Assembly: GCA_000708835.1 (NCBI GenBank)
Contig: DF237073.1
Location: 86,752 to 150,751, forward strand
Source: Klebsormidium nitens
Taxonomy: Eukaryota; Plantae; Klebsormidiophyceae
Length of the DNA stretch: 64,000 nt
Direction of reading: 5' to 3'
Positions within the stretch are counted from its first letter, which is position 1, and the number at the start of each line of letters is the position of its first letter. Made by a program: the position numbers and the translations under genes. This document shows positions 8,882 to 61,600 of this stretch, one piece after another. The notes below the pieces were generated by a model that saw nothing but the letters and a program-made list of their open reading frames with translations, was not told the DNA's origin and searched no databases.

Positions 8882-11800
8882 ATGGGGGCTGGCAGAAAGA
8901 CGCAGACCACAACATATGATTCAGCAAATCGCCAAGGGGGCCGGGGCCCTCCTCCGCAGTACAAGAAGCTGGACAAAGATGAGCTGGGAGGGGTCATCTT
9001 TGGGGCGACGAAGGACACCATCAATGAGTGCCTGACAAAAAACATCTTCGGTGAGTTGAACTCTCAGCTTCTAAGGTATTGTCAAGTGTAGCTCTCTCTT
9101 ATGTTTATAGATGGTGAACAGTGGCGTAGTCTGGAAAGGACAGAGGCTTCTAGGCCTGCATCTGTTGCATACGAATGCGCAAGTTTGCTTACAAAAAGGT
9201 GGTGGAGAGGCCAATCAAGTTCGTGTGTCCTTCCATCTGTGTGTTATCTAGGTTCACACCAGACAGAAAATGTTTTGTTGCTTGGGATATTGCAAATCAA
9301 CGGCAGTTGCCTTGGCAATGGTTGAAAGGCATTCTCTTGTTGCACGAAGAAACCCCTGAGTTTTCGATTGACGGAAGTTTTCACCTGCTTCAGTTCTCAA
9401 TTCACCATTTTGACAAGAAAGGGTCCCATAGACAATGGGCTTCCGGGTACTGCACGACCAACGCTTTCTTGAGCTCATTGCTGCTCGGAAACGCCTAGGT
9501 GTTGAGCAGGATTGCCTGCTTGCTTCATAGGAGTTGGATTGTGTGACCAATTGTGAGTTGCTGGTTGCTTGTGCCGCTGGACAAAGCTGAACTTTTAACA
9601 TACCCAATGTCAATAAACCTTTTCAAAGTTGTACAAGCTTCACAATGGGTCGCAAGGTTCTTTGGCAGTCAAGATCAAGGGCTGCTGCATTGAGATACAA
9701 CCCAATTTGCACATGTGTCATGTTATGTGGCTCTTATGCCTTCTGGCGGTGAACAATCTGCTCGTTCAGTGCTGACAAAAATAACCTGATTTGAAGATTG
9801 CTTGATGTAAACCATTTCGAGATTTGTTGGATGTATGTAATACATGCTTGATGTATCAATGGCCGAGGAAATTTGAAGCCCTTGACTGTATTCCAAGCTT
9901 TGGCAGAGCTCCCATGGTCCAGAGGACTTCGGAAGCACGCACCAAGCAGATCTGCAGCGTCAATGTTCGTTCTGTGAGCTCCTCATCTGTACTGGCCTGT
10001 ACTTTCCTCATCATTTCTCACATTTTGTGCCTTTCCCCAGTCTTTTAATCCTTTCCCCATCTTAACAGATTCTTGACCACCTCAGACGCTCTTCTTCTCT
10101 ATCCAGGGCTGCCGTACAACCACATCAGCTATGTCCAGAACATTGTTCCCGGCATGCCCCTCTTCCTCTTCAATTATTCTGACCGCAAGCTGCACGGCAT
10201 CTTTGAGGCCACCTCTGAGGGGGAGCTGCACATCGACCCCAACGCCTGGAGCCGGGATGGCAAGACCGAGACGAGCTATCCTGCGCAGGCGAAGATCTTG
10301 TTCAAACACTGTCTTCTACGAGCTTATTTGACTCCACTTGAGAAATTATTGTTTAGGGCGCCAGGCATGCCAAGGAACTTTGTGTTGACACTTATAATAC
10401 TGGACCGCTTTCCTACTTGCAAGGAGCGAGCTATTGCATGTCGGAAAGTTCATGTTGGTGCCATGAGCAAGTTGATGGATTCAGGATGTCGAAGGTTGAG
10501 TCTCGAGTACCTTAAAAGCGACTTTGTGCTTCTGAAAGTCGAACAATTGAGGATAAGTCGGCACTCGAGCGGTGGGTCCCTCCTCTGCGATCCTCCTGCT
10601 TGCCTGGGGCCTGGGATCCATCATTGGCCCGGTCGTGGGCGGATGTTTGCCCGCCCGCGCGACACGTGGAACCTGGGGGACACGTGTCCTCCTCTCCTCC
10701 GTCGATGCCCATACCTGCTCCCGTGCACATTAGGCAGCGCGGTCTCCTTGTTCGCCAGCACTGACCCTAGCGAATCGGTCTAACTTTGGTTTCACTCCCA
10801 AAGAGCCAAAAGGCCAGCCCACATCTCACTAAAAGACTGATTCTTGAGTCAGGACGACAAAGTAAATCTGCCTCGCAGAAGAAGTTCGCCTTCAACAGAC
10901 AAGGCCCTACTAATTGGGGTCTTAACGAGTTGGGCAAAAGCAAGGGGCGCTTTGTGGTGAATCCCCTGATGATGGTTAAGACTTGTCTCCGGACCAACAC
11001 CTTCTTGTGCCTCCCACTAGAGTTCGTTGCTTTCCATCACTCTTTGTCAGATGCCTACCAAGGTCTTCCCTAATGGTCAAACTGAGTCTACCTTTACGCC
11101 GTGTCTTTCTCCATCAGCGGCGCAATTACACAAAGCAGCAAGCCTGACCAGACACACTGGCCCCACACTCAAGGGCACACAGGAAGTAATGGAACACCCC
11201 ATGTCCTTTGGGCAATCTCTAAGAATCTCTCAATCGTTCAACTTTATCCTTCCAATAGGTGCGCGTGAGGTACCGGGAGAAGTCTCAGCCGCTGCATGAG
11301 GCCGTCTTTGGCCCCGTCATCGAGGAGAACTACTACAGCAACGTGCACTTCATGTTCGAGCTCACGCAGGACCAGGCCGCCACCCTCTGCTCCCTCTTCA
11401 CCGCGCGCAACCCCTCCCGCCCCGCCACCGCGCCCGTCCCCCAGGTTCGGCTAGTTCTTCTCGTCGCTGCTAACGCCATGATTCCCCTAATCTGTTCTCC
11501 ACTTTGGCTCGAGTGTTCTGTCTCGCCTGTGCTTCCGATCTTGAATCGGCTAATATTCGATCTCTCGCGTTTGCCAGGTCTGCAGCGTGGAATCCTGCTT
11601 CATGTGAAAGGTTCCCTCTTGAGTCTCATGGTGTTAAGCAACTTTGACGGCGTCTCGTGGACAATCACAAGCAGCAGGAGGCCGAGGTCTTACCGGTTTT
11701 TCTCCTGTCCTCCGCCTGCAGCAAACCGTTGCCTCCGGCCACGCCGCCGCCTGGGCCGGCGCTTCCGGCCAGGGCGACAGCGCCTGGGGAACCGGGCCCC

Positions 11801-14800
11801 CCGCGAACGCCTGGGGCGCAGCGCCCCCGCCCAGCCGACCTGACACAGCATCGTCATCCAAGCCCCCCCTGCCGGCGTGGCAAAGCGGGCCGGCGGGGCC
11901 GTCGAGCAACGGGGGGAGCAGCGCATCAACGTCGAGCGGGCTGCCAGCCGACGGGGGCGCTGCAGCGGAAGCGGAACGGCGGCGGCAGCAGAGCGAGCGG
12001 GACCGGGAGGCGGCGCGGGTGAGGGAGGAGGAGGCGCGGGCGGCGGCGGAACGGCAGGCGCGGGCGGAGGCGAAGATGCGGGCGGCAGCGGCGGAGGAAG
12101 AAGGTGAGGGGGGAGTGTGCGGTGGCATCTGCTACCGTTCAGCGGAAGAGTACTAGCGAATCTCGTTGTTGACAGGATCAATTTCACGGATCCTGAGGCT
12201 GAGATGTACCATTCAAACATTCACAAAGGAGGTAGTTTCAGTTCACTGCTGTGAACGGGGTTATTGTGTTCCTACTGGACTTCTACCTTGCTGCAGCAAA
12301 TATGAGTCCGATAAGCAGGCGCTCGTGCTCTGCGTGGAAAACAGACCGAATACCTGCTTTGCAGGTCTTCTTTGCTCGTGCATCTGTTCTGAAGAGTCGG
12401 CAACGGGGATGCTGGATTGCAATTTCGTAGTTGGAGAAACGACATGCAGAATGAGACAGGACCTTTTTTCAAAGGCGTCATCTGCGATCAAAACCTGGAC
12501 CTGTTGGGTCCTCGCGTTTTCATGTTGTCCTTTTCAAGCCGTTCGGTGAAAGTCCGCCAATCCTCTCGAAACGACGGTGCCTGAGCGGCGAGCTATTATC
12601 GATTCGTGCTTGTGCCGATTGTAGAAAACATTTGATTACCCATCTTTATTTGTCGATTTTTACAGAGCGTCGGAGGCTGGAGGAGGCCGCGGTCGAGCGG
12701 CGCCGGGCCGAGGAGCGCGCGGAGCGGGAGCGCCAGGTCCTGGAGAAGCTCAAGAAGGTCAGTGTGAACGGGCCCTCGGCGAACGGCGCCTCCGAGCCGA
12801 GCTCTTCGAGCGGTGTGAACGGACCGAAGAGCGCGGAATGGGAGCGCGAGGCGAATGCGCGCGCGGAAACGGAGCAGGCACAGCTGAAGGAGGAGCGCAT
12901 GCGGCTGTTCGACGGGAGCCGGCCGCTCGAGGTGGCGGTCAAGGAGACGGTGCAGAAGAACCTGGAGCTGTGCGCGGCGGCCATCAGTCATGTGAGTAAT
13001 GGCGGAGGGGTTGGTAGATTGAATCTCCCGTTGACTTTCTACTTGTTTCGAGTGCGCTTAGGAAGAGACGAGAGGTCTTTGTGGGGCCGGTTATAGTCCT
13101 TCTTGTAGTCGTAGCATTCAGGCTACGAGTGAACGTGCTGACCGGATGACTGCTGTGTGGGAGTCCGGTTCTGCTGATCAGTACCCTCAGGGCGTCGTAG
13201 AGCCTTCATAAAAGGTGTATCGATTTGTGGAGATTCTTTGACTTGTTTAGAATAAGAACAGGTTGATCAAAGCCGCTGCCCTGTTCTCAACAGCATACCG
13301 TATCACCACTTTCTTAAAAATTGTATCCGATGATTCTCTGAGTGAACCTGGTACTGTGGTGCAGATGCGGCAGGAGGCGCTGAAGAGCAAGAAGCTGGCG
13401 GAGGAGATGACGTCAGGTGACGCGCAGATGCAAGAGCTGAAGGAGGTCCGAGCGGAGAACCAGCGGTTGGCGCGGTCGCAGGTAAGCCACCTGGGGTGCG
13501 GTTTACCTTAAGACTCGGATCGGAGCTTCGGAAGGATGCGAAACCTGCGAATCTGTGGGTTGGGCGTTCCATGACCGCTTCAATTTGATTGATCTGACTA
13601 AACTTCGCGGCTGTTCGAAGGCGGCGATGAGCACTGATCTTAACTGGTCTTCTTGCCTGACCAGTCCTCTTTGTTCGTTGACCAGCTCATCACCGTCGAG
13701 GTCATCCTTGGAAACGGACAGTCGAAAGTCTCTGTTCTGACATGCGCACCTCGCACCGCCGCGAGAACTCACATCCTTATCCGCTTCTCCGCCTGGCGCA
13801 GACGGTCATGCAGCGGCGAATGGACGAGCTCCAGGCGCAGATGGACACCCTGCGGCAGAGCGTCGTGGACCTCCTCTCCGGCGGCCACGTGGCAGGCAGC
13901 CCCGCGCCGTCCCCCGTGCGCCCGCGCCCGCAGGAGGTGTATCTCATGGGCGGTTTCAACGGCACGGAGTGGTTGGGTTCGGTGGACCGTTACCGGCCGT
14001 CCCGGGACGAGTGGGAGGTGGTCGCGCCGATGTCCGCGAAGCGCTCGTACGCGGCGTCGGCGGTGCTCGACGGGATGGTGTACGTGTTCGGAGGCGGGGA
14101 GGGCCAGCTGTGGTACGACACGGGTGAGGGTCGGAGGACTTCTTTTGGGCCTTGTTGCGAAGTGCAGCATATGGAATAGGGGGTTTCTTGCTTTTGTTTC
14201 GGCAAAGCGGAAAGAGAGTACCGTCGTCTGGCGAAGTGAGATGCGTATACTCAGAATGAAAGTACGATCCCGAAGGGAAGCTGAGATTGTTCCAAAAATC
14301 GAAGTTGCTGCGCCGCTTCAAGGACCCCATTCACTGTCTCTACGTCAAGCAGACCCCAAACTTTCCATCTCAAAATTAACGGTTTTGAGATACACGTTAC
14401 TTTTTGAGAGCACCTCTCATCGCCCAGTGTTTCGTGTGAGCCTGCAAACTCCGCTACAATTGCAGCGATTCATACCCTCTCTGGCACCGTTCAAGCTGGT
14501 AATCTTTCTCTTCAAACCCACCAAGACCCGGTTACCAGATTCGCGGATCTTAATGTGCTGCTCCACTGCAGTTGAACGGTACGACCGTGCCAGCAACTCG
14601 TGGGCGACCCTCTCGAAGATGAAGATCAAGCGGGGCAGCCTTGGGGGCGCCGCCGTGCAGGGCAAGATCTACGCTGTCGGGGGGGGCAACGGTGTCAACA
14701 ACTTTGCTGACGTGGAAATGTACGACCCCGGCGCTGACAAGTGGCTCTCCGCGCCCCCCATGCTCGACAAGGTGCGTGACCAGCGGTCGCTTTTGCGTTT

Positions 14801-17279
14801 CCGAAGAGTGCTGGTTGCGAAGAGGAGAACGTGGGCTCGGAAGCCCTCCCCCTTGCTCAGCGCCCCTTCGATTCACGGTCGACAGTTTCTATTCGACCCA
14901 CTGTTCTGGGAAAGGAGAACGTGGGCTTTTGAAAAGCCTCCCACTGTTCTCAGTGCCCGTTCAATCGGGAGCTGAGCTTGGGGAATCGTTGCAGGCGTGT
15001 AGATGCCGTGGACGGTAGCTACTACTGGTTCCATAAGACCGAGTCTTTCCTCCCCGGCTTTTTCAAGTTACTCTTCTACTGCATCCGCCTCGAGGGTGAC
15101 ATCTGGAGAGCACGAAGAGCTACCCTTTTGCCGGATGTTCGTGAACATGAACGGACAGTCTGCCTTATAATCTCTACCATTTTGCGTGTGTCGCATTGCA
15201 TATCCAAGTGACGTGGTTGCACGGTCTGCTTGCAGCGCTTCTGTGTGGCGGCCGCGGAGATGCACAACTCGCTGTACGCGCTCGGAGGCTTCGACGGGCA
15301 GCAATACCTCCCGTAAGGCGCCTGCAGCTTGTGCTCGTAAATCCGATTGTACAATCTTAGCGCCTCGTTTCTGTCAGTTTCGTGGCCGCCTTAGCTGTCT
15401 CCCGCGTGCCGAGTCCTGCGCCGCAGCCATTGTTCTACTTGAGTAATTCCGAACAGTTTTGGCCGTTGTCTGTGTGAGACACTTTCTAGGCTAGCTGCGT
15501 AGGAAAGACCTCCTTAGTACTAAGCTTGATCATTTTTGACGCGCTGTGTTACGCTGGCTACTTGATTGCTTCGCATGTTCGGTTGTATTAATCTTCGTTC
15601 ACAACCCTCCACCCTCGAGCGGCTATATTCCTGAGACGTCGAGTATTTTAATGTTTCTCGTGTAAGCACGTCTTTCAACGTTTACTATCCTCTTCGCAGG
15701 ACCATGGAGCGGTTCGATCCTCGCGAGGGCTACTGGGTGCGCGCTCCGTCCATGTCGACCAAGCGGGGGAGCCTGTCCGCTGCAGTGTACAACAACAGCC
15801 TGTAAGCTGCGCGCTCCCTCTTTCTGCTGCAATTGCGAGGTTTCCACGAACTGACGCCTGACAAACTTTCCGGGTGCTGGTGCTCCTGGTGGTCCTCTCT
15901 CTGCTCTTTTCTGGAGCAGAATTGGTTCAAGTTTCGTTGTTGCGTTTCGTCATGCGATCGCCAGAAGTGATCACTTAGTGTGGACTTTTGAGCGGTTCAC
16001 TCAGCGGATCTGGTTGCTGTCTTCGACAGGTTCGCCTTGGGAGGCTTCGACGGGAACGTGTTCTTGAATACTGTGGAGACGTACGAGCCGCGCATGAACA
16101 AGTGGAAGCTGGTGAGTGGCCAAGGGTATATTGTCTTTACAACGTCGAGGGAGACGACTCAGATCAGATTAGTTCTTTCGATGCACTGGCGGTAGGCAGC
16201 CGAAGCTTTGACAGCCCTCTTGATTACATGGTGTGTCCTCTTCGTTCAACATCAATCTGTCCCCGGGACTAGCTTCCCGCTTCATCGTCCGTCTCTTTTC
16301 TGTTTGCTTTTTAAAGAGGATCCGTTCGCTTTCTCATTGATTCAAAAGAGTGCCCAGCGGTTTCATGTCGCGAAACTGGATGCTTACGGACTTGACGACT
16401 CGACTTCTGGGTCCACTTCTTCCAATTGACTGTTACGATAATATTGGCTGATGCTGAGAGGCGATTGGCTGATCCTAAAGCAGACGTCCGGGAAGCAGCT
16501 CCTGTACTCGTGTGGGTAGTCATAGACGGAAGGAGGGGAGACTGCTTGACAACAGAACTTCGTGTCGGAGGGAGGGTGGATCTTTGAGGAGCTTCCATCT
16601 TCGACCTAGTGGTTCCTTGTAAGGTATTTCAATAACCGTTAAGGAAATCGCAGCGAATCTATAGGAACTTCTTTAAACCGTTCGAGTCTTGGCACTAGGC
16701 TGGCCCACTCACTTGTTGCAAGAACTGGAGGCTTCCGACCGGTGCTGACACCAGTCGCCACTCCTTTTCGCTCCTTCAGGTCCCTCCTATGCACACGCAG
16801 CGTGCCTACGGCGCGTCGATGGTCGTCGACAACGCGCTCTACTTCATCGGCGGCCTCGACGGAGCACTGCACGTGGATTCGGTAAGCGCTCGCCGCTAAT
16901 TACGTTCCACATGCTTCTCCGGGTACACATCCTCACCAACGGTCTTTTGGTCGGTTCTTTCGACTTGCTGGTGTGGACTACAAACCAAATTTTTGTTCTG
17001 CCGTTTGTGCCACAGAAGCTTTGTTCCTGTCTGCGTGCCGCCTGGCGCCGCTCTTTGCTGTCACTCACTCTTTACGCCGTTTTCCGAGATTTTTCGGAAG
17101 CCGTTTGATTCATTTTCAAGGCGGATAACCATTTGTGGCGATGCACTGCTTGCATTTGATCAATTTGTCCGTTCTTCTTGCCACAGGTGGAGCGGTATAC
17201 GCCCGAGGCGGGGTGGCAAGTTGTGAAGACGCGGAGCAACTCCAGCAAACGAAGCTTCCTGGCCGTCGCCGTCTTGTAG
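8882..17279 (+). CDS. DCD-domain / coiled-coil / Kelch-repeat protein (~779 aa)
   Basis: 13 phase-consistent exons: 8882-9050, 10107-10288, 11259-11444, 11722-12103, 12666-12991, 13365-13481, 13802-14123, 14572-14771, 15236-15312, 15700-15801, 16030-16111, 16780-16881, 17187-17279. N-terminus MGAGRKTQT; DCD motif LGGVIFG..GLP..H..YV..I.PGMPLFLFNYSDRKLHGIFEA; C-terminal Kelch repeats (GG..G, VERYD, W....PM). Confidence 0.93.
10587..10760 (+). pseudogene. Frameshifted MFS transporter (ZIF/ZIFL-like) fragment inside DCD-Kelch intron 2
   Basis: One frame reads AILLLAWGLGSIIGPVVGG. After an apparent 1-nt deletion near 10641 the next frame reads MFARP...PLLRRCPYLLPCTLGSAVSLFA. This resembles the ZIFL/DHA1 segment AWGxGxIIGPxxGGxLAxP...FPYLLPC (recalled). 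Confidence 0.65.
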
Positions 17280-18551
17280 ACCGTTGCTAGAGCTCTCTGA
17301 TACATGTTCGAACGCGCTGTTCGGGAATGGTGTATGAGTCCAAAGATACGAAGAATATCTCTTGTAACTCGTCCACGTAGGTAGGGTGTTTCTGGAACAG
17401 AGCTGCTTTGCGCTAAAGTGGCACCGCCTTGTTGAACCCGAAACTCCACCTGGTGTTTGTGCGTGTAGATGCCGGATGTTGAATGCACGAGAATGATCAT
17501 TGTGTCTGTGTGGCAGCTCGATGGACTGCCTTGATTCCAGTGGCTCGCGATTTCCTCCTGATGTACCTCACTTTCGGCTCGTCCTGCGAAGCTGCGCCTT
17601 ATTGCAGACATGAGGTGGATTGCAGTGCCAGCTTCACTTGTCGACTGCCTTAAATTTGGATGAGGGCGCCGCCGCTTAGAAGCGTTACATCTGTCGAATG
17701 ATTGTGTTCGAGATGAACGCCGCATCTATTTATCCTGTGCATTTGACCGCACGGTCCTGATTCACTTCGATCAAGCTAGAAGCTATATGCGAGCTCTCCG
17801 AAACGAGTTTCGTCATGGACAAGGTGCATGTCGGCAAGCTTTTCAAGCGTTTGCACCACCATTATATTCATGCAAACCTAAAATCCTGCAGCGATCATGC
17901 ACAATGTTGATTCGATATTGCATGCAGATAAAAAGCTGTTCTAACAGCTATACCCCGACCAGCACGTTGCAATATCATGCTGTTGCAATGCGATATGAGC
18001 GGGACCACCTGCGATAAAGTACTCATCGAATACATATACACCTGGGCAAATATCTGGTCAGGCTCTGCGTACACCTTGTGATATAGCAACCCAGCTCCTC
18101 ATGCCTGGCGATCTACGTTCGCGAAGGCCGGGATGATTCAGTGCGTTGATGGCCTTTCGTTCTTCGAAGCACACACAGGCGCACTTGATGATTACGCCCT
18201 GATCAACAGGCGCGCAGCACTTTGAGTATTGACGTTCCGGTGATTGACATCGCTTACGGATGTGGGTCGCGCCTGTGAGACTATACGACGACTCACAGAC
18301 TTCGACTCTAGACATTACTGGGCACCTCCGCTAGGTAGCCCGCTACCGCTGAATGCTGAATTCAGCTAAAGTCTCGCTCCTGGTGACATAAAGAAGGTTC
18401 GACCGCGGGGCCAGAGATCGTTTTGCTCCACATGCTTGTTGCTGCTCACAGCGGAACCCTAGAGAAAACAGCAGCGCACTTGCTCTTCTCAGCCCTGAAC
18501 ACGTACCGGTTGTTATTCTTGTCGCTCTCAACGCAGAAGGGGCGCCAAAGC

Positions 18552-20323
18552 ATGGGGTCCTCAGATGTAGCGCCCGCGGAAGGAGAAGCCAGCATGCCGA
18601 AGGACTTGTCGCTGGCAATCTCCGTGCAGCAGAATCTCAAGCTGTGTGCCGCAGCAGTTGGTCAGGTGCGCGTACAGCTCTCTGAGGCGCGAAGCACAGG
18701 ATGATACAAAGAGGAACCTTTTGCAGCGGAGCTGGGTCTCCGTAGCTTGCCTCTCTGTTCCCTTACACCTTTCAATGGATCTCAGGCACGGTCGCAGATT
18801 GAAGACCGTTGTGCGCATGAGAGCTGAAAAGATCAACCGCGTTGTCCTTTTGAAACTCAGATTGGATTTGGCTCTCACCTCTGTTCAAAATGCAGATGTC
18901 TCTGTCCTATTTTAGCGCTTTGATACTGGTGTTAAAAGAATCTGCGAGGGACAGAAGATGGACTTGTATCATTTCTGAAACAGGATCATGCTTGACATGA
19001 GACTTGTGTTCTAAGGAATTCTGACCAGAGCATCCTCGTGCATGCCACATCTTACAAAGGAGGAGTTGTCCAAGCGTGCCAAATGCATAATCAGCGGCAG
19101 TAAAAGCAAACGGATCTGGGGCACTATTGCCTGGAACGACATAAAACTGACTCTGTATATGAAGAGAAGTTGCTTCTTGGAACCAGGCTGAATCGCAATC
19201 TTGAATGGTGTGCGCCTAATTGGTTGAAGGGCATACTCTTCAACCCTAATCAAGAGTTCTCCTAGCAGACCTCGTTCCTTGTATAAACCACGTTACTGCT
19301 TTCAACCACGCTCAATCACTTGGAAATCTCAACGAAGGTGTGCGCTTAATGACAGGGCTCAGTCTTGACAAGGGCTTCGTCCTGCGCATCTTTTGCAGAT
19401 GCGGCAGGAGGCGATCGCGCACCGCAAGCTGGCGGACGGGATGCCCTCGCGAGCGCACGAGCTGCGCGAGGCTCAGGCGGAAAACGAGCGGCTTAAGAGG
19501 ATACATGTGAGAACACAGTTCTGAGTGCCCTTCAGAAGCCCAGACTATCTTGACTCAGAAACTGAGTCCAGGATGGACGTGGGCGCTTTTCCCGATCCGG
19601 GAAGCCACTCAAAAGAGACGATGAACCAGAGTCACCGTAGTGCTTGCCGAGAAGCGTTGAGCAGGTTCGGCACTTCTTCATGATTTGTGGGCTCGAACCA
19701 TGAATCATCTCATCTTTTGAGGAAACCGTCGGAACAGCTCAATCTCTGACAGCGCGTCATTCGGAACTTTGAGACCTCAGATTTACGACAGTTACAGCAC
19801 TTGGAGACCTCAGATTTACGAAGTTACAGCGATTGAGTGGCAATGCTCAAGAAATCGCTCGTGAGGCGCATGAAGAACACGATGATCGTAGCTTGACCGA
19901 GCAGAGCAAGCACCTCTCTTCATTGTCGCTGACGTTGAATCCATGTCGCAGAGATCCCAACGGCTACATTTAACGCCTGACCTGCTGTCTCCTATATTGA
20001 CAGCCTTTTCCAGAAGTTCGCCCTGAAGCTCGTCTCTGCTGGTAGAACTCGCGTACGAGTTGCTCTCCAGACGTTTGCGCTGCGCACACTGGCTCTCCAA
20101 CAGGACGGTAGCAGTATGGTTCGATTCTGACCTGACAACCGAAACAGAATATTCTGCTCTGATTGTGCAGTAAGGTCGTCCGTCGTCTTGACAACCCGTT
20201 GTCTTCTTGCAGGACGCGACGCGTTGCCGGTTGCAGACGATGCAGGAGGAGATGGAGGAGCTTCAGCAGTTGACTCGGCTCCTGATCGCCTCGCGAACTG
20301 GCCAGGCGGGAGCAGAGTACTAG
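18552..20323 (+). CDS. Small coiled-coil protein (~110 aa) paralogous to the coiled-coil exons of the adjacent DCD-Kelch gene
   Basis: Exons 18552-18665, 19399-19506 and 20213-20323, all phase 0 with canonical GT-AG. Exon 1 ends VQQNLKLCAAAVGQ (DCD-Kelch: VQKNLELCAAAISH). Exon 2 shares 19 of 36 residues with DCD-Kelch exon 13365-13481. An acceptor at 18536 may add an upstream exon. Confidence 0.8.
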
Positions 20324-20868
20324 AGGACTGTTGAAATTAGCAGTCCAAGGAGCCTCATCCTTTATCCTTTGGGCCTGTACGTGCTCTTTGAAACGACAGC
20401 CATCTCACTCGATCAACCGTAAGTGGTCGGACGCAGGTGCTCTAAGGTCATGATCGTTGCACTCAACCGGACCGCGTATAATCAAAGCTGGACGCAAGCT
20501 AACAGATGCGGACCACGCCATGCGTAATATATATACGCAACAACCGCGGGTTGTTTAAGCATTTTGATCCGGATTTGTGGATATACGAGCCAGTGTGGCA
20601 TATGCGCGAGGACGCCACGGCATCATTTGTCCATACCCCATAGCCTACGCGCAAGTTCCCATTCCGATTCCACAAGATATTTTTCGTGCATGAGCGGCAT
20701 GCATAAGGATATTTCCAAAGGTGCGAGCGAATACTAAGAGCAAGCATTTGACAAGCAAAGTGCGTGGGCAGTCGCAAATTTGCGTGCAGTCGCTTGCATC
20801 CTAGTCATTCACGGACCAGACCAGTTTTAAGCAAAAAGTCAACTCTCTACTTGCGCGTTCACAGACAA

Positions 20869-23194
20869 TCAGAGTTCCCTGGTGTCTAGCTGTTCTTGCG
20901 TTCTCAGATCTTCCGGACAGACTGTATCCCAGGGGTACGGAAAACTCAGGGTCGCCGCGTCATGAGGGGTGTCCCACGTATCGTAGATGTACCTGCAAAC
21001 AAGGAAAAAAAGGTGACGTCAGGCTGGCCTGCTTTTGCAGAAGGCACGAACGTAGTTCGGTCCCATACTAACGTGAACATTCTTCAAACGAGCGCTGCAC
21101 TACAGCCCTGTGCAGATTCGCAGCCGAAGGCCCCTTTCTGCTGTCCAACTCGGCAATCGTTCGGGCGACCGTGCTCCATGCATAGGCTTTCAAGCGCCTA
21201 GTCGACGGCGCGAAGCCAAGAGAACACAGTTTTATGCAAGCACTTCAACCACTGAAGATTCTGAAGCACTCACACTCTGATGGGCGGCTTGGATATGATG
21301 ACAAGCACCGTCAAAGCCTCAGTCGGATGCAGATTCCGCACCTGCAGAACATGAGTTGAATTAGCCTTGGCCAGATCATGAATAATTTCGGGGAATCTGG
21401 AATTTTCAGTCAACTCATGTGCAACCTGGCTTCATACATTGTCCAAAACTCCTGAGAAGTGAAACAGACAGAAATAAGCGTCGCTTTCAACGGTTCTCGT
21501 GTCACTGGAGTGGTTTGCTTTTGATGGTTCAAAGCGATTCACAATAGCAATCGCCATACCTTTGGGGATGGAGTTGCTGGAGTTTCGATGATGGAAAGAC
21601 TTCTAAACGGTTGGGAACAAGCGGGGTGGCTTGACACGAGCTTCGCTAGGTGGATTGAAAACCAGCGGTTCTTCAGCGTTTCTTAGATGCAGTTTCTTAA
21701 CAGAAGAAGCTCGAACAATCGGTTGTCCCAATTCAGGCTTTGCAGACTCGGCATTCCGTGGACGATACCAACGGAGTCGCTGCACTTGTGGTGCCCAGCA
21801 ACCAAAAGCTCACCGTCTCCCTCCGAAAACCAGAAACCTGAGCAACTTTTCGAGTGGACGCCTTCCCTCTGATCGGAAGCAAAGCACGGGATCCGCAATA
21901 AAAGCGCGAGGAGCCCACATATAAGCTCTGGTACCCACCTGATGAACCGCATTGAGGGGGATCCGAAAGGTACTGTTGGCGGCCGCCCGGCTCCCAACCC
22001 GCGGCCCCGGCCTACCGCTCTCCTTTTCCCCGTCTACCTCCGCACGAAGGTACGCGGCTTCGCCTGCCTGGACGATAAAGACTTCCTCGCAGTCGTGGCG
22101 ATGGATGGGCGTTCCCGACCCGGGTGCAAAAGTTTGCAGCCAGACTTCCAACTGCGCCGAGGGGTGAACATCTTAGGTTAAGGCCATAGAATGGTTGACG
22201 CCATGGGTTTGAGGGCGGAGTAGTGTCGCCATGGGTCTGAAGGTGATCGTTAGAGCACCCATGCTAGCGTTAATTTATAGTCAGCCGTCCGCCCATCCCT
22301 GACAATACCCTCTAGACGCTTATCCAGGAAAAGTCTGGGGGGCAAAGATAATGAATGGTCTGACCGGAACAAACGCAGTATTCTGCAAGCTGCCCTAAGG
22401 TAAGACTTTGTGCCCGCACAATCTGGAGCAGGTTTGCGTCAGCTCTGGACTCGTGTTGGAAAACAATTTTAAATACGGAAAGCCACTAAGTCCCGGATTG
22501 CATGTAGATTTCTCAGCTTGGCTGTCCATCTCTTGGCCTGGCTGGTCCATTTCCTGCTATTAAAACTTCTCGTTTCATGTACCTGTCGATCGGCAGGGCT
22601 AGACCCAAAACAACCATAATAGTGAGGCACACCTCTTTCATGCTGTGATGCTTCGCCCCCCATATCGTCATGTGCGAGAGGCCGGGCCGCCCGTAGTTGT
22701 GCTGAGGCATCTCCCCCAACTTCTGAACGTGGGGCGCTGTAAAGAAGGGGTACAGTGAGAGACTCGATCAGATGTTTCAACTGGGACTTGACGGTCAACT
22801 CCAGCATGGGGGAAAGTACATAGCGGGGAGAAAGAAATGCTTTGCAGTGCTGTATACAATGTTCTGATGAATAGTAGTATGAGGCGGGGCGCGTAAAAAT
22901 GAAGCCTCATAGAAAAAGGTTTGAAACCTAGCAAAGCAATGCTAGGAAAAGCGCAAACCGGATGAAAACTTCGCAGAGGCTCGTTTTGTCCAAAATGGTG
23001 ACACCAAGAGGGCATAAACCGATTTGAAGCGTCCGTGGCAACCTCATACCACTTGCAAATCACTCACTTGCCCCTGCATCAGCGCACTCCTCCCAAGCAT
23101 GGCTGTAAGACGACGCAGCCAAAAGCCAGGCTAGCAGCGCACATCTCCTGCTCCAATGTAACCCAATGCTACCGTGCCCTGCTGAAATTGGCAT
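20869..23194 (-). CDS. ABP1: Auxin-binding protein 1 homolog (cupin, ~211 aa)
   Basis: Five exons: 23194-23068, 22736-22633, 22151-21939, 21341-21274, 20992-20869. Signal-peptide-like ALLAWLLAASSYSHA; MPQHNYGRPGLSH; EVWLQTFAPGSGTPIHRHDCEEVF (box A); NSTF.IP.N.VHQV (box B); IISKPP; FPYPWDTVC; C-terminus DTREL*. Confidence 0.93.
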
Positions 23195-58600: not shown

Positions 58601-61600
58601 CCGCGAACTCTTTTCGATCTATTCTGACCCGCTTCTGTGTGCACCTCAATCTTTCGTGTTTGAAGACGGTGGTCAAAGCTCCAAAAAGGTGCTATATTTT
58701 GTCAGATGAGACGGCGATACCAATCACAACAAAGAGATTCGCTCACGATACCGCTCGGGAACTGAAGCCTGGCGTGAATCCAGATACTGTGTGCTGATTC
58801 AAAGTCATCCTTTCTTCTTGCTTTCACGAAATTGTGCAACCCTGTAGAGACCCCGCTATCCTGCGTCCCCGAGAGAGTCGTAACCGGGCGTGAATAATTA
58901 CATGATGCCTAGTAATTCATCTTAAGCCCTCATTTAAAGTTGCGTACATAAGGGGTTGCCTCTATATACATCTTCCTCTCCGTATGCACCTATGTCTACT
59001 GTATAAGTATGTATATATAAGCGGATACGTACCCGTCTTTCCTTGGATCTACCCCAAGAAAACGCCTTCATCATTCTCATTCTCCTCCTTATTCATAAAA
59101 ANNNNNNNNNNNNNNNNNNNNNNNNNNNNNNNNNNNNNNNNNNNNNNNNNNNNNNNNNNNNNNNNNNNNNNNNNNNNNNNNNNNNNNNNNNNNNNNNNNN
59201 NNNNNNNNNNNNNNNNNNNNNNNNNNNNNNNNNNNNNNNNNNNNNNNNNNNNNNNNNNNNNNNNNNNNNNNNNNNNNNNNNNNNNNNNNNNNNNNNNNNN
59301 NNNNNNNNNNNNNNNNNNNNNNNNNNNNNNNNNNNNNNNNNNNNNNNNNNNNNNNNNNNNNNNNNNNNNNNNNNNNNNNNNNNNNNNNNNNNNNNNNNNN
59401 NNNNNNNNNNNNNNNNNNNNNNNNNNNNNNNNNNNNNNNNNNNNNNNNNNNNNNNNNNNNNNNNNNNNNNNNNNNNNNNNNNNNNNNNNNNNNNNNNNNN
59501 NNNNNNNNNNNNNNNNNNNNNNNNNNNNNNNNNNNNNNNNNNNNNNNNNNNNNNNNNNNNNNNNNNNNNNNNNNNNNNNNNNNNNNNNNNNNNNNNNNNN
59601 NNNNNNNNNNNNNNNNNNNNNNNNNNNNNNNNNNNNNNNNNNNNNNNNNNNNNNNNNNNNNNNNNNAAGAACCGTTATCTAGCAAAGACAGAAGTTCAAA
59701 TGATGAAAGCGAGAATGAACCCAAAATGAGGAATTTTCTTTTCAAGTCCTTGAAATTAACTTAGTATGCAGGTATGTCTCCTCATTCGCACTCTCTTCAT
59801 ACTATTCGGTGAAAAGAATGAAGCATTTGATGAAAAACGTGAGAGTTTTCACGATGAATGCCTCACGATTCATCAAGAGAAGGATGAAGTGAGGAGCCTG
59901 AGAATGAGGCCCAATCTTGTAATTTCTCACTCCCCGTTACTGCTTCGTGGCGTCCCCTCGGAAACGTTCAGGCGCGACTGACCGGCTAACACTACCAGCC
60001 CCCACTGAATGCATCTTCTCGCAGCTGAGGTGTTTGACCTGCGGAAAGCGGACACTCAACGAACCGGAGCCGTTCGTGGACCTGAGCCTTGGAGTCAGCG
60101 GCCCCTCTCTCGAGTCTGCTTTGGAGGGGCATATGGTGGCGGAAACGCTATGTGGAGAGGACAAGGTGTTCTGCGATGGAGAGTACTGCGAACGGAAGCG
60201 CCCGACCATGATCCAGACACTCATTCGGGAGCCGCCAAGAATGTTGATTGCCCACGTGAAGGTGGGTCCTTGGAACCTTTCAATTTCGCCCGTGCTGCCC
60301 TCTCTGGCCTTACTTTGTTACCATAACAAGAAATTAGGATCCATAGTTCCAACTGCCTTTGTAGGCCCCGGATTCCAAGGCCGTGCGTTCCACTTCTTGT
60401 ACCATATGCGTTTGGGCGTTGAGAAAGTGCTTGACGAATCTGATAAACAGCTTCTTTTTTCCTGCATCTTTGAATCGCGTTGCTTCCGCTTCCGCCAGGA
60501 AAGATTCTACTAATGATTTCGGAGAACCGATGTGTTGAAACCTTTGACCTTTGACTTCACTCATATTGATCAGAATTCCGCTTCGAACAGTCGCTGTTCT
60601 TTTTACGTCATTCAAGTCGCTGATATCGAAAGAGCCTGTTTTCCGTTCACGAATCCAGATCGCGGTTTCCAATCCTATGTAAGCTTGGTCGAAGATGCAA
60701 TAAACAGCCTCGAAGAGCTTCCATTCGTTTCCCTGCAGCGTTTCAAGGAGAACGGCGCAAAGGACGCAGCTCACGTGGGTTTCAGCCAAACCCTTTCCGC
60801 CGCTGACTACCTGGTCCCCGCCAGCCGCGCCTCGCGGCCACGCTACAAGCTGGAGGGCGTCGTCGTGCATGAAGGAGAGTCCCCCAACGCCGGCCACTAC
60901 ATCGCTTACGTGCTCATCGGAGGCAGCTGGTACCTGTTCGATGACGCAAGCGTGACGAGAGCAGAGTGGGCGGAGGTCGCTGCGGCGCAGGGGTACATCT
61001 TCTTCTACAGACGCACTCACCCTGACAGCAGTCTGCAAGTTTATCCGTCCCGGGGACGCGCGCGCGACGCGCGCGACGGGCGGGCGCGACCCGCGCCGCG
61101 AGACGATGCGCGACTCCCGAGTGCGCTCTCGGAGGCGCGGAAAACGCGCGCGTGTACTGAGACTGCCCTAGCGGATGCGCGCGAGGCGCAAGCGCGCGCA
61201 AAGGAGGAAGGCGGTCGGTACGCACCGGAGGCAGAATCAACGGAGCCCTCCTTGGGAAACGAGCCCCCAGGCCAAGGCGCAGCCTTTGCGAAGGTGGGTG
61301 TCGATCCGTTGCCTAGCTTTCCAGGCCTCTTGAATTCGTCACTCAAGGAGAGTCTTCGGTGGAGGTATAATCTTGGCCAGAGGCAAGGGTACGTACGATG
61401 TTCAGGACCAATCTGAGAAGCTTGTCGTCAAGTTCACGCCTTTGATGTAGAAGCGGCCGCTTCCGCAGAGAAATGTCGCCAGACTTGGTTCCAATCGAGC
61501 CGGCTTTGAGGCGCAGCTAATGACCTTCAGCGAGAACAAGGATAAGAACGGGCTGTTTGCCGCCATTTTAAATTCACGAGCGTCTCTGAGAGCCTCCTAT

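Follow-up and report, generated by a model that had tools for sequence, protein, structure and literature searches.

MicroProteins of the LITTLE ZIPPER (ZPR) type, of the Id/HLH type and miP1a/b are among the closest described systems and have been defined previously (PMC9638782, PMC4807768). The DCD-Kelch proteins constitute subgroup IV of the DCD proteins of Tenhaken et al. 2005, with At5g01660 in Arabidopsis (PMC1182354), and the DCD-Kelch protein of rice is OsKEAP1 (PMC7716215, PMC8001349). According to the legend of Fig. 1 in PMC7716215, the feature diagram of OsKEAP1 also contains coiled-coil boxes drawn by SMART. Judging by PMC1182354 and by that legend, the DCD-coiled coil-Kelch architecture is general in plants.

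We analyzed a window of 64,000 nt of DNA from Klebsormidium nitens NIES-2285 (GCA_000708835.1, scaffold DF237073.1), by which we mean the whole stretch under study. It contains a three-exon mini-gene located downstream of a DCD-Kelch gene, which we call the parent, and related to the linker exons of this gene. We are highly confident that the mini-gene is a real and complete three-exon protein-coding gene of K. nitens which remains under selection. Its product is a well-supported candidate for a truncated-paralogue mini-protein, the kind of protein being known and the setting being unusual.

Like ZPR, Id/HLH and miP1a/b, the mini-protein is small (12 kDa), consists of a single module and goes back to the duplication of a larger multi-domain protein, followed by loss of domains. 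Of the parent it retains a helical module predicted to be of the interaction type, and none of the other domains. Three features of microProteins were observed, namely a small single-domain product, sequence relationship to a larger multi-domain protein encoded in the same genome and the loss of the parent domains. Unlike in the known cases, the mini-protein is not homologous to any of the ZPR, HLH or B-box proteins; Pfam gave no HALZ or bZIP match, and there is no homology to the HD-ZIPIII leucine zipper. The presumed target also differs from that of the ZPR type, as it would be an adaptor-like DCD-Kelch protein and not a transcription factor. Further, the host is a streptophyte alga and the mini-gene stands in tandem with its parent.

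The mini-gene shares intron positions with DCD-Kelch genes, but its product contains neither DCD nor Kelch and is a fragment-derived paralogue outside that architecture. With truncated tandem pseudogenes it has its origin in common, the incomplete copying of a gene in tandem, here of a few internal exons. However, such relics decay; in three lineages the mini-gene shows a low dN/dS and has retained its open reading frame and splice sites, besides gaining a start and a stop of its own. In the literature we found no paper on the mini-gene or on a microProtein of DCD-Kelch proteins.

Structure of the mini-gene

The parent gene is located on the plus strand (8882..17279) and encodes a DCD-Kelch protein of 779 aa; it corresponds to a gene call on DF237073.1 with the Dev_Cell_Death and Kelch families. 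In the parent exons Pfam recognized PF10539 (6e-21 and 1e-9) and Kelch_1 (2e-14). The distance between the parent stop (17279) and the ATG of the mini-gene (18552) is 1272 nt, and both genes are on the plus strand, which agrees with the 1.3 kb and the common orientation given in the preliminary description of this locus.

All features of the mini-gene are on the plus strand. The 5' UTR covers at least 18393..18551, as a contig of RNA run X3 is unspliced over 18393-18602 and an X1 contig begins at 18456. The coding part of exon 1 (18552..18665) encodes 38 aa and is followed by intron 1 (18666..19398, 733 nt), exon 2 (19399..19506, 36 aa), which is the best conserved part, intron 2 (19507..20212, 706 nt) and the coding part of exon 3 (20213..20323), which encodes 36 aa and the stop TAG at 20321-20323. 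The 3' UTR covers at least 20324..20449, where an X4 contig is unspliced from 20213 to 20449. Spliced contigs and reading of the splice sites both place the introns at these positions. All exons are in phase 0 and bordered by GT..AG, and translation gives 38 + 36 + 36 = 110 aa. Three intact phase-0 exons encoding 110 aa had been described before; the translations, the splice borders and the stop codon agree with that description.

The mini-protein has a calculated mass of 12.1 kDa and a pI of 5.9; it is a single-domain protein below the limit of ~20 kDa for microProteins. No Pfam family was assigned to it. Using blastn of the mini-gene locus against the rest of the window, we detected no flanking repeats or traces of transposons, and a search of 17280-20800 with Rfam gave no sign of a known small RNA in the transcript. 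A 33-bp unit is tandemly duplicated within intron 2 (19766-19830).

Homology to the linker exons of the DCD-Kelch gene

We compared the mini-gene with three plus-strand exons of the parent linker: exon a (12666..12991), exon b (13365..13481, 39 aa) and exon c (13802..14123). The last ~27-39 codons of exon a are the source of mini exon 1, exon b that of mini exon 2, and the first ~32 codons of exon c, which encode the end of the linker helix, that of mini exon 3. The remainder of exon c encodes the first Kelch repeat. The comparison also included two further Klebsormidium-like lineages. One is represented by L001, the Logan assembly of SRR23617307, which carries the mini-gene, and by L003 from the same sample, which carries the parent; the other is represented by L004, a JGI metagenome contig carrying both genes.

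VQQNLKLCAAAVGQ and VQKNLELCAAAISH, the matching peptides of mini exon 1 and exon a, are identical at 9 of 14 positions, and exon 2 is identical to exon b at 19 of 36 positions; both counts reproduce those reported earlier. In the alignment the two mini-gene introns sit at the positions of the parent introns, and the order of exons is kept. The mini-gene exons had been said to mirror the end of DCD-Kelch exon 12666-12991, exon 13365-13481 and the start of the exon beginning at 13802, and the matching peptides, their order and both intron positions bear this out.

When all open peptides of the parent region were compared with the rest of the window by tblastn, exon 2 was found with E = 4e-8 and the tail of exon 1 with E = 3e-3. 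In 5000 composition-preserving shuffles, the scores observed with exon 1 (z = 9.4) and exon 2 (z = 13.8) were never reached. The match of exon 3 was weak by itself (z = 2.6, score reached in 114 of 5000 shuffles), but in the six sequences (three mini-proteins and three parents) it aligns gap-free, starting at the intron boundary. High alignment scores were limited to the cognate pairs of mini and parent exons. The overall identity of the mini-protein to the parent is ~30%, and 30 of 99 columns are invariant in the six sequences, including core L/M positions and the Asn of AENxRL at a heptad 'a' position. The non-core motifs VQxNLxxCAAA, MRQEA and AENxRL are common to mini-proteins and parents in 6/6 sequences.

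On the level of DNA, blastn matched solely the first 50 nt of exon 2 (78%). The introns of the mini-gene and of the parent could not be aligned by blastn, and those of the parent linker are 373 and 320 nt long versus 733 and 706 nt in the mini-gene. For intron 1, blastn gave no alignment to the orthologues either. This is what had been noted before, that is, introns without evident similarity next to intact frames and splice sites. Neither DCD (PF10539) nor a Kelch repeat was found in the mini-protein by Pfam, and tblastn of the parent-region peptides against the rest of the window revealed no DCD or Kelch remnant around the mini-gene, its 3' flank included; the reported lack of both domains was confirmed.

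In L004 the homology to exon a reaches the extreme N-terminus of the mini-protein. Therefore the whole mini-protein derives from the parent. Since the DCD-coiled coil-Kelch architecture is plant-wide, we take the parent for the older form and infer that the mini-gene was derived from it, not the reverse. The sequence comparison shows that the mini-gene originated in an old, partial tandem duplication that took in the linker exons (the end of a, the whole of b and the start of c) of the upstream DCD-Kelch gene.

Transcription and limits of the gene

We used RNA contigs from one study comprising four runs (X1-X4), presumed to be RNA runs. Contigs identical to the window skip introns, therefore they derive from RNA. 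The junction 18665/19399 was present in X2 and the junction 19506/20213 in X2 and X4, so both splice junctions predicted in the preliminary description were observed in contigs of this study. One of the two contigs across intron 1, from X1, uses a donor 5 nt upstream (GT at 18661..18662), joining the exon end at 18660 to 19399. The computed product of this donor is shifted in frame, has 68 aa and ends at a stop at 19494-19496. The alternative donor is missing in L004 (gggcag/GTACAT), while the productive donor is kept in all three lineages. Few contigs cover the mini-gene. Contig depth was 3-4 for the mini-gene versus 150-390 for neighbouring genes, although depth is a poor measure here.

Unspliced contig cover passes through the stop codon of the mini-gene (20213-20449). 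In the four-run study there were no contigs between 17368 and 18287. The convergent neighbour on the minus strand (20764-22153) is a cupin gene of the Auxin_BP family (PF02041), whose 3' end, near 20764, is ~300 nt away from where the mini-gene transcript, as far as known, ends. It is spliced in contigs at 20990/21272 and 21338/21936, and both its synteny and the TPMT gene downstream of it are kept in L001. As no contig was found in 17368-18287 and the convergent gene ends near 20764, there is neither room nor evidence for further exons of the mini-gene. Additional exons making a full-length protein had been considered as a possible objection; none were found, the stop codon being inside an unspliced contig and the orthologue having stops upstream.

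Orthologues, selection and age

The orthologue contigs were reached via exon-level ORF calls from word searches, and exon-joined models of the orthologues and of the parent linkers were compared in local scripts only. In 3/3 Klebsormidium-like lineages the mini-gene has the same start, keeps both phase-0 introns in place and ends with a stop codon within exon 3. The mini-proteins have 110, 114 and 114 aa, which gives a conserved product of 110-114 aa, and the ATG of exon 1 is kept in L001 and L004. In L004 the mini-gene is located 1.5 kb downstream of its own DCD-Kelch gene, so even the most distant of the available lineages retains the tandem.

Between K. nitens and L001, blastn aligned the exons and the 5' region only, and not the introns. 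Exon 2 shows 89% nucleotide identity in this comparison. There is one coding indel, of 12 nt, which is in frame and located in exon 3; the stop codon is kept, and similarity falls off beyond it. The dN/dS of the mini-gene was 0.09-0.15 at a dS of 0.42-0.66 (Nd = 14.5 on 251 sites, Sd = 27.5 on 79 sites, P = 6e-9 under neutrality), so the ratio near 1 that had been named as evidence against the gene was not observed. Comparisons with the L004 mini-gene gave P = 4e-4 and P = 2e-5 under neutrality. These comparisons show that purifying selection has maintained the mini-gene in at least three Klebsormidium-like lineages.

The homologous segment of the parent is more constrained, and the mini-protein evolves ~2-3 times faster. 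Between K. nitens and the lineage of the L001 sample, dN was 0.04-0.06 for the mini-gene and 0.004 for the parent segment, and the tree branches of the L004 lineage were 0.34 for the mini-protein versus 0.15 for the parent. In the maximum-likelihood tree the three mini-proteins and the three parents formed reciprocal clades with 100/100 support, separated by a long branch. Therefore the duplication long predates the split of these lineages. The proposal of an old partial duplication kept by selection gains support from the spliced RNA, from orthologues with identical exon structure in two further lineages, from the dN/dS values (0.09-0.15) and from the reciprocal clades.

A phmmer search with the mini-protein over 1.84 billion representatives returned only the mini-protein itself and one orthologue fragment; the parent was not recovered at E <= 0.001. 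Word searches gave nothing beyond these two sequences, and metagenome scans with the alignment of exons 2/b and with that of exon a gave no matches. Since not even the parent is recovered at the scale of the database, little can be concluded from the lack of matches in other taxa; gene calling on genomic contigs rarely picks up pieces as small as an exon.

Predicted helix and possible action on the DCD-Kelch protein

AlphaFold2 run without an alignment predicted a disordered N-terminus followed by one helix spanning residues 17-108 (92 residues, mean pLDDT 86). Heptad positions a/d carry 61% of the hydrophobic weight in the second segment of the mini-protein, versus 29% expected; the first segment is less canonical (46%). 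The heptad register is identical in the mini-proteins and the parents, and the invariant Asn of AENxRL occupies an 'a' position in both. Leucine zippers with a buried Asn at 'a' tend to form parallel, in-register dimers. The retained module is thus predicted to be a heptad coiled-coil helix and is a candidate protein-protein interaction module. In the first segment 10 of 16 invariant residues, within VQxNLxxCAAA and MRQEA, lie off the a/d core, which may point to a common surface contacted by a third partner or to higher-order packing.

By a crude count of g-e' charge pairs, homodimers and heterodimers are free of repulsive pairs, and in attractive pairs the heterodimers equal or surpass the parent homodimers. 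Homodimers of the mini-protein have as many attractive pairs as heterodimers, or more, in two of three species. Prediction of a complex between the mini-protein and parent exon b alone (39 aa, run without controls) gave an ipSAE of 0.00 in two runs, a value that speaks neither for nor against binding. In the ESM Atlas we found only generic coiled-coil or zipper look-alikes with chance-prone scores.

We propose that the free helix of the mini-protein would form an in-register pair with its homologue in the DCD-Kelch protein, or alternatively that the mini-protein would occupy a partner which recognizes the invariant surface motif VQxNLxxCAAA..MRQEA. By either route the valency of DCD-Kelch or its partner binding would be altered, which would make the mini-protein a microProtein-like modulator of its parent. 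We tentatively give this reading, in which the mini-protein acts by pairing with the DCD-Kelch helix or by occupying its partner, a probability of about 0.4. The dominant-negative, heterodimerising regulator put forward in the preliminary description is compatible with the modelled features: mini-protein and parent have the heptad register, the a/d core and a buried Asn in common. Several observations count against a modulator. The identity of ~30% and the 2-3 times faster evolution also fit a diverged, independent function, and the 10/16 off-core invariant residues of the first segment suit a shared third partner as well as pairing. The contig depth of 3-4, poor as it is as a measure, gives no sign of mini-gene abundance, and a frame-breaking donor is used in one of the two contigs across intron 1.

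The main rival is an independent small coiled-coil protein, which we also consider quite possible. According to this explanation the helix came to self-associate or to bind partners of its own and ceased to act on DCD-Kelch, its link with the parent being only historical and the shared residues reflecting general needs of helix packing. The long branch between the two clades, the faster evolution of the mini-proteins and the mini homodimers, which equal or exceed the heterodimers in attractive g-e' pairs in 2/3 species, would all fit it, as would the phmmer result, in which the parent was missing at E <= 0.001 among 1.84 billion representatives, and the generic zipper-like helices of the Atlas. 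However, VQxNLxxCAAA, MRQEA and AENxRL are invariant non-core motifs shared with the parent in 6/6 sequences, and the tandem arrangement persists in L004, the most distant lineage available; both speak against independence.

We keep the modulator as our first reading, in the form of a credible candidate for a small protein tuning its DCD-Kelch neighbour. Should the mini-protein indeed act on the parent, an early-diverging streptophyte would provide a case of a microProtein beyond the transcription factors with which such proteins are usually associated. The broadest version of this idea, a microProtein aimed at a non-transcription-factor target (the plant-wide, 'KEAP1-like' DCD-Kelch) and linked to this target since before the Klebsormidium-like lineages split, seems to us rather unlikely. 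In that version, regulation by truncated paralogues would operate in streptophyte algae, and the invariant VQxNLxxCAAA..MRQEA..AENxRL helix would be the site of DCD-Kelch assembly or partner binding. Preservation of a stand-alone linker copy under selection argues that the linker functions as a module by itself, and the mini-protein could serve as a simple reagent for probing what the DCD-Kelch linker binds.

Start codon and the public gene model

In GenBank the mini-gene is represented by the hypothetical protein KFL_001240220 of 150 aa, which has the same three exons. Its start is an in-frame ATG at 18432, inside the 5' UTR of the mini-gene as we define it, and it has 40 extra N-terminal residues. 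If this 150-aa protein were the true product, the hydrophobic extension would target or anchor the helix, and there would be no free soluble microProtein. An RNA contig does reach 18393, upstream of this ATG, the frame is open from 18387, after a TGA at 18384, and 18432 is the first AUG of the known transcript, as annotated in the database record. However, the ATG at 18432 is missing in L001, where stops and indels of lengths not divisible by three interrupt the upstream frame, and L004 has a stop upstream and no in-frame ATG ahead of the conserved start. The Kozak context is weak at 18432 (ctccacATGc) and good at 18552 (caaagcATGg).

Since the 40-residue extension is not conserved and the context at 18432 is weak, the 110-aa model represents the conserved product and is the better model. 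We consider it improbable that the 150-aa protein is the true product; this form may be at most an isoform specific to K. nitens. The public gene model is corrected accordingly from 150 aa to the conserved 110 aa.

A decaying relic of a partial duplication, transcribed by chance and without protein function, is largely refuted and very improbable: the low contig depth, the use of a frame-breaking alternative donor, the lack of a Pfam domain and the database name of hypothetical protein would agree with it, but three lineages retain an intact open reading frame, start and stop together with the splice sites and phases, while the introns cannot be aligned between K. nitens and L001 by blastn, dN/dS is far below 1 (P = 6e-9), the coding indel is in frame, and the productive donor is conserved in 3/3 lineages with the alternative one missing in L004.

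Other observations on the window and the DCD-Kelch gene

Low G+C at 58-60 kb of the window was considered as an AT-rich island and rejected. In the 2-kb profile G+C dips to 0.33 at 59000-59750, and the value of 0.000 at 59250-59499 corresponds to an assembly gap of N.

An intron inside the DCD domain of the parent has an apparent GC donor at 10288-10290 in K. nitens (cag/GCgaag), and L004 has GT there. An ENA contig of 717 nt (P0006) contains a 119-aa ORF in which the parent motif MRLFDGSRPLEAAVKETVQKNLELCAAA is fused directly to an inositol-monophosphatase-like sequence (PF00459); this ORF is most likely a chimeric short-read assembly.

In the region of the last parent exon (17161-17297) all four RNA runs also hold contigs that are ~93% alike (8 differences in 112 nt) with a depth of 214-393. 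These contigs diverge to a similar degree in the intron preceding the last exon and in the 3' UTR following it. A second expressed DCD-Kelch copy must exist, be it a paralogue, an allele or the gene of a second strain in the culture.
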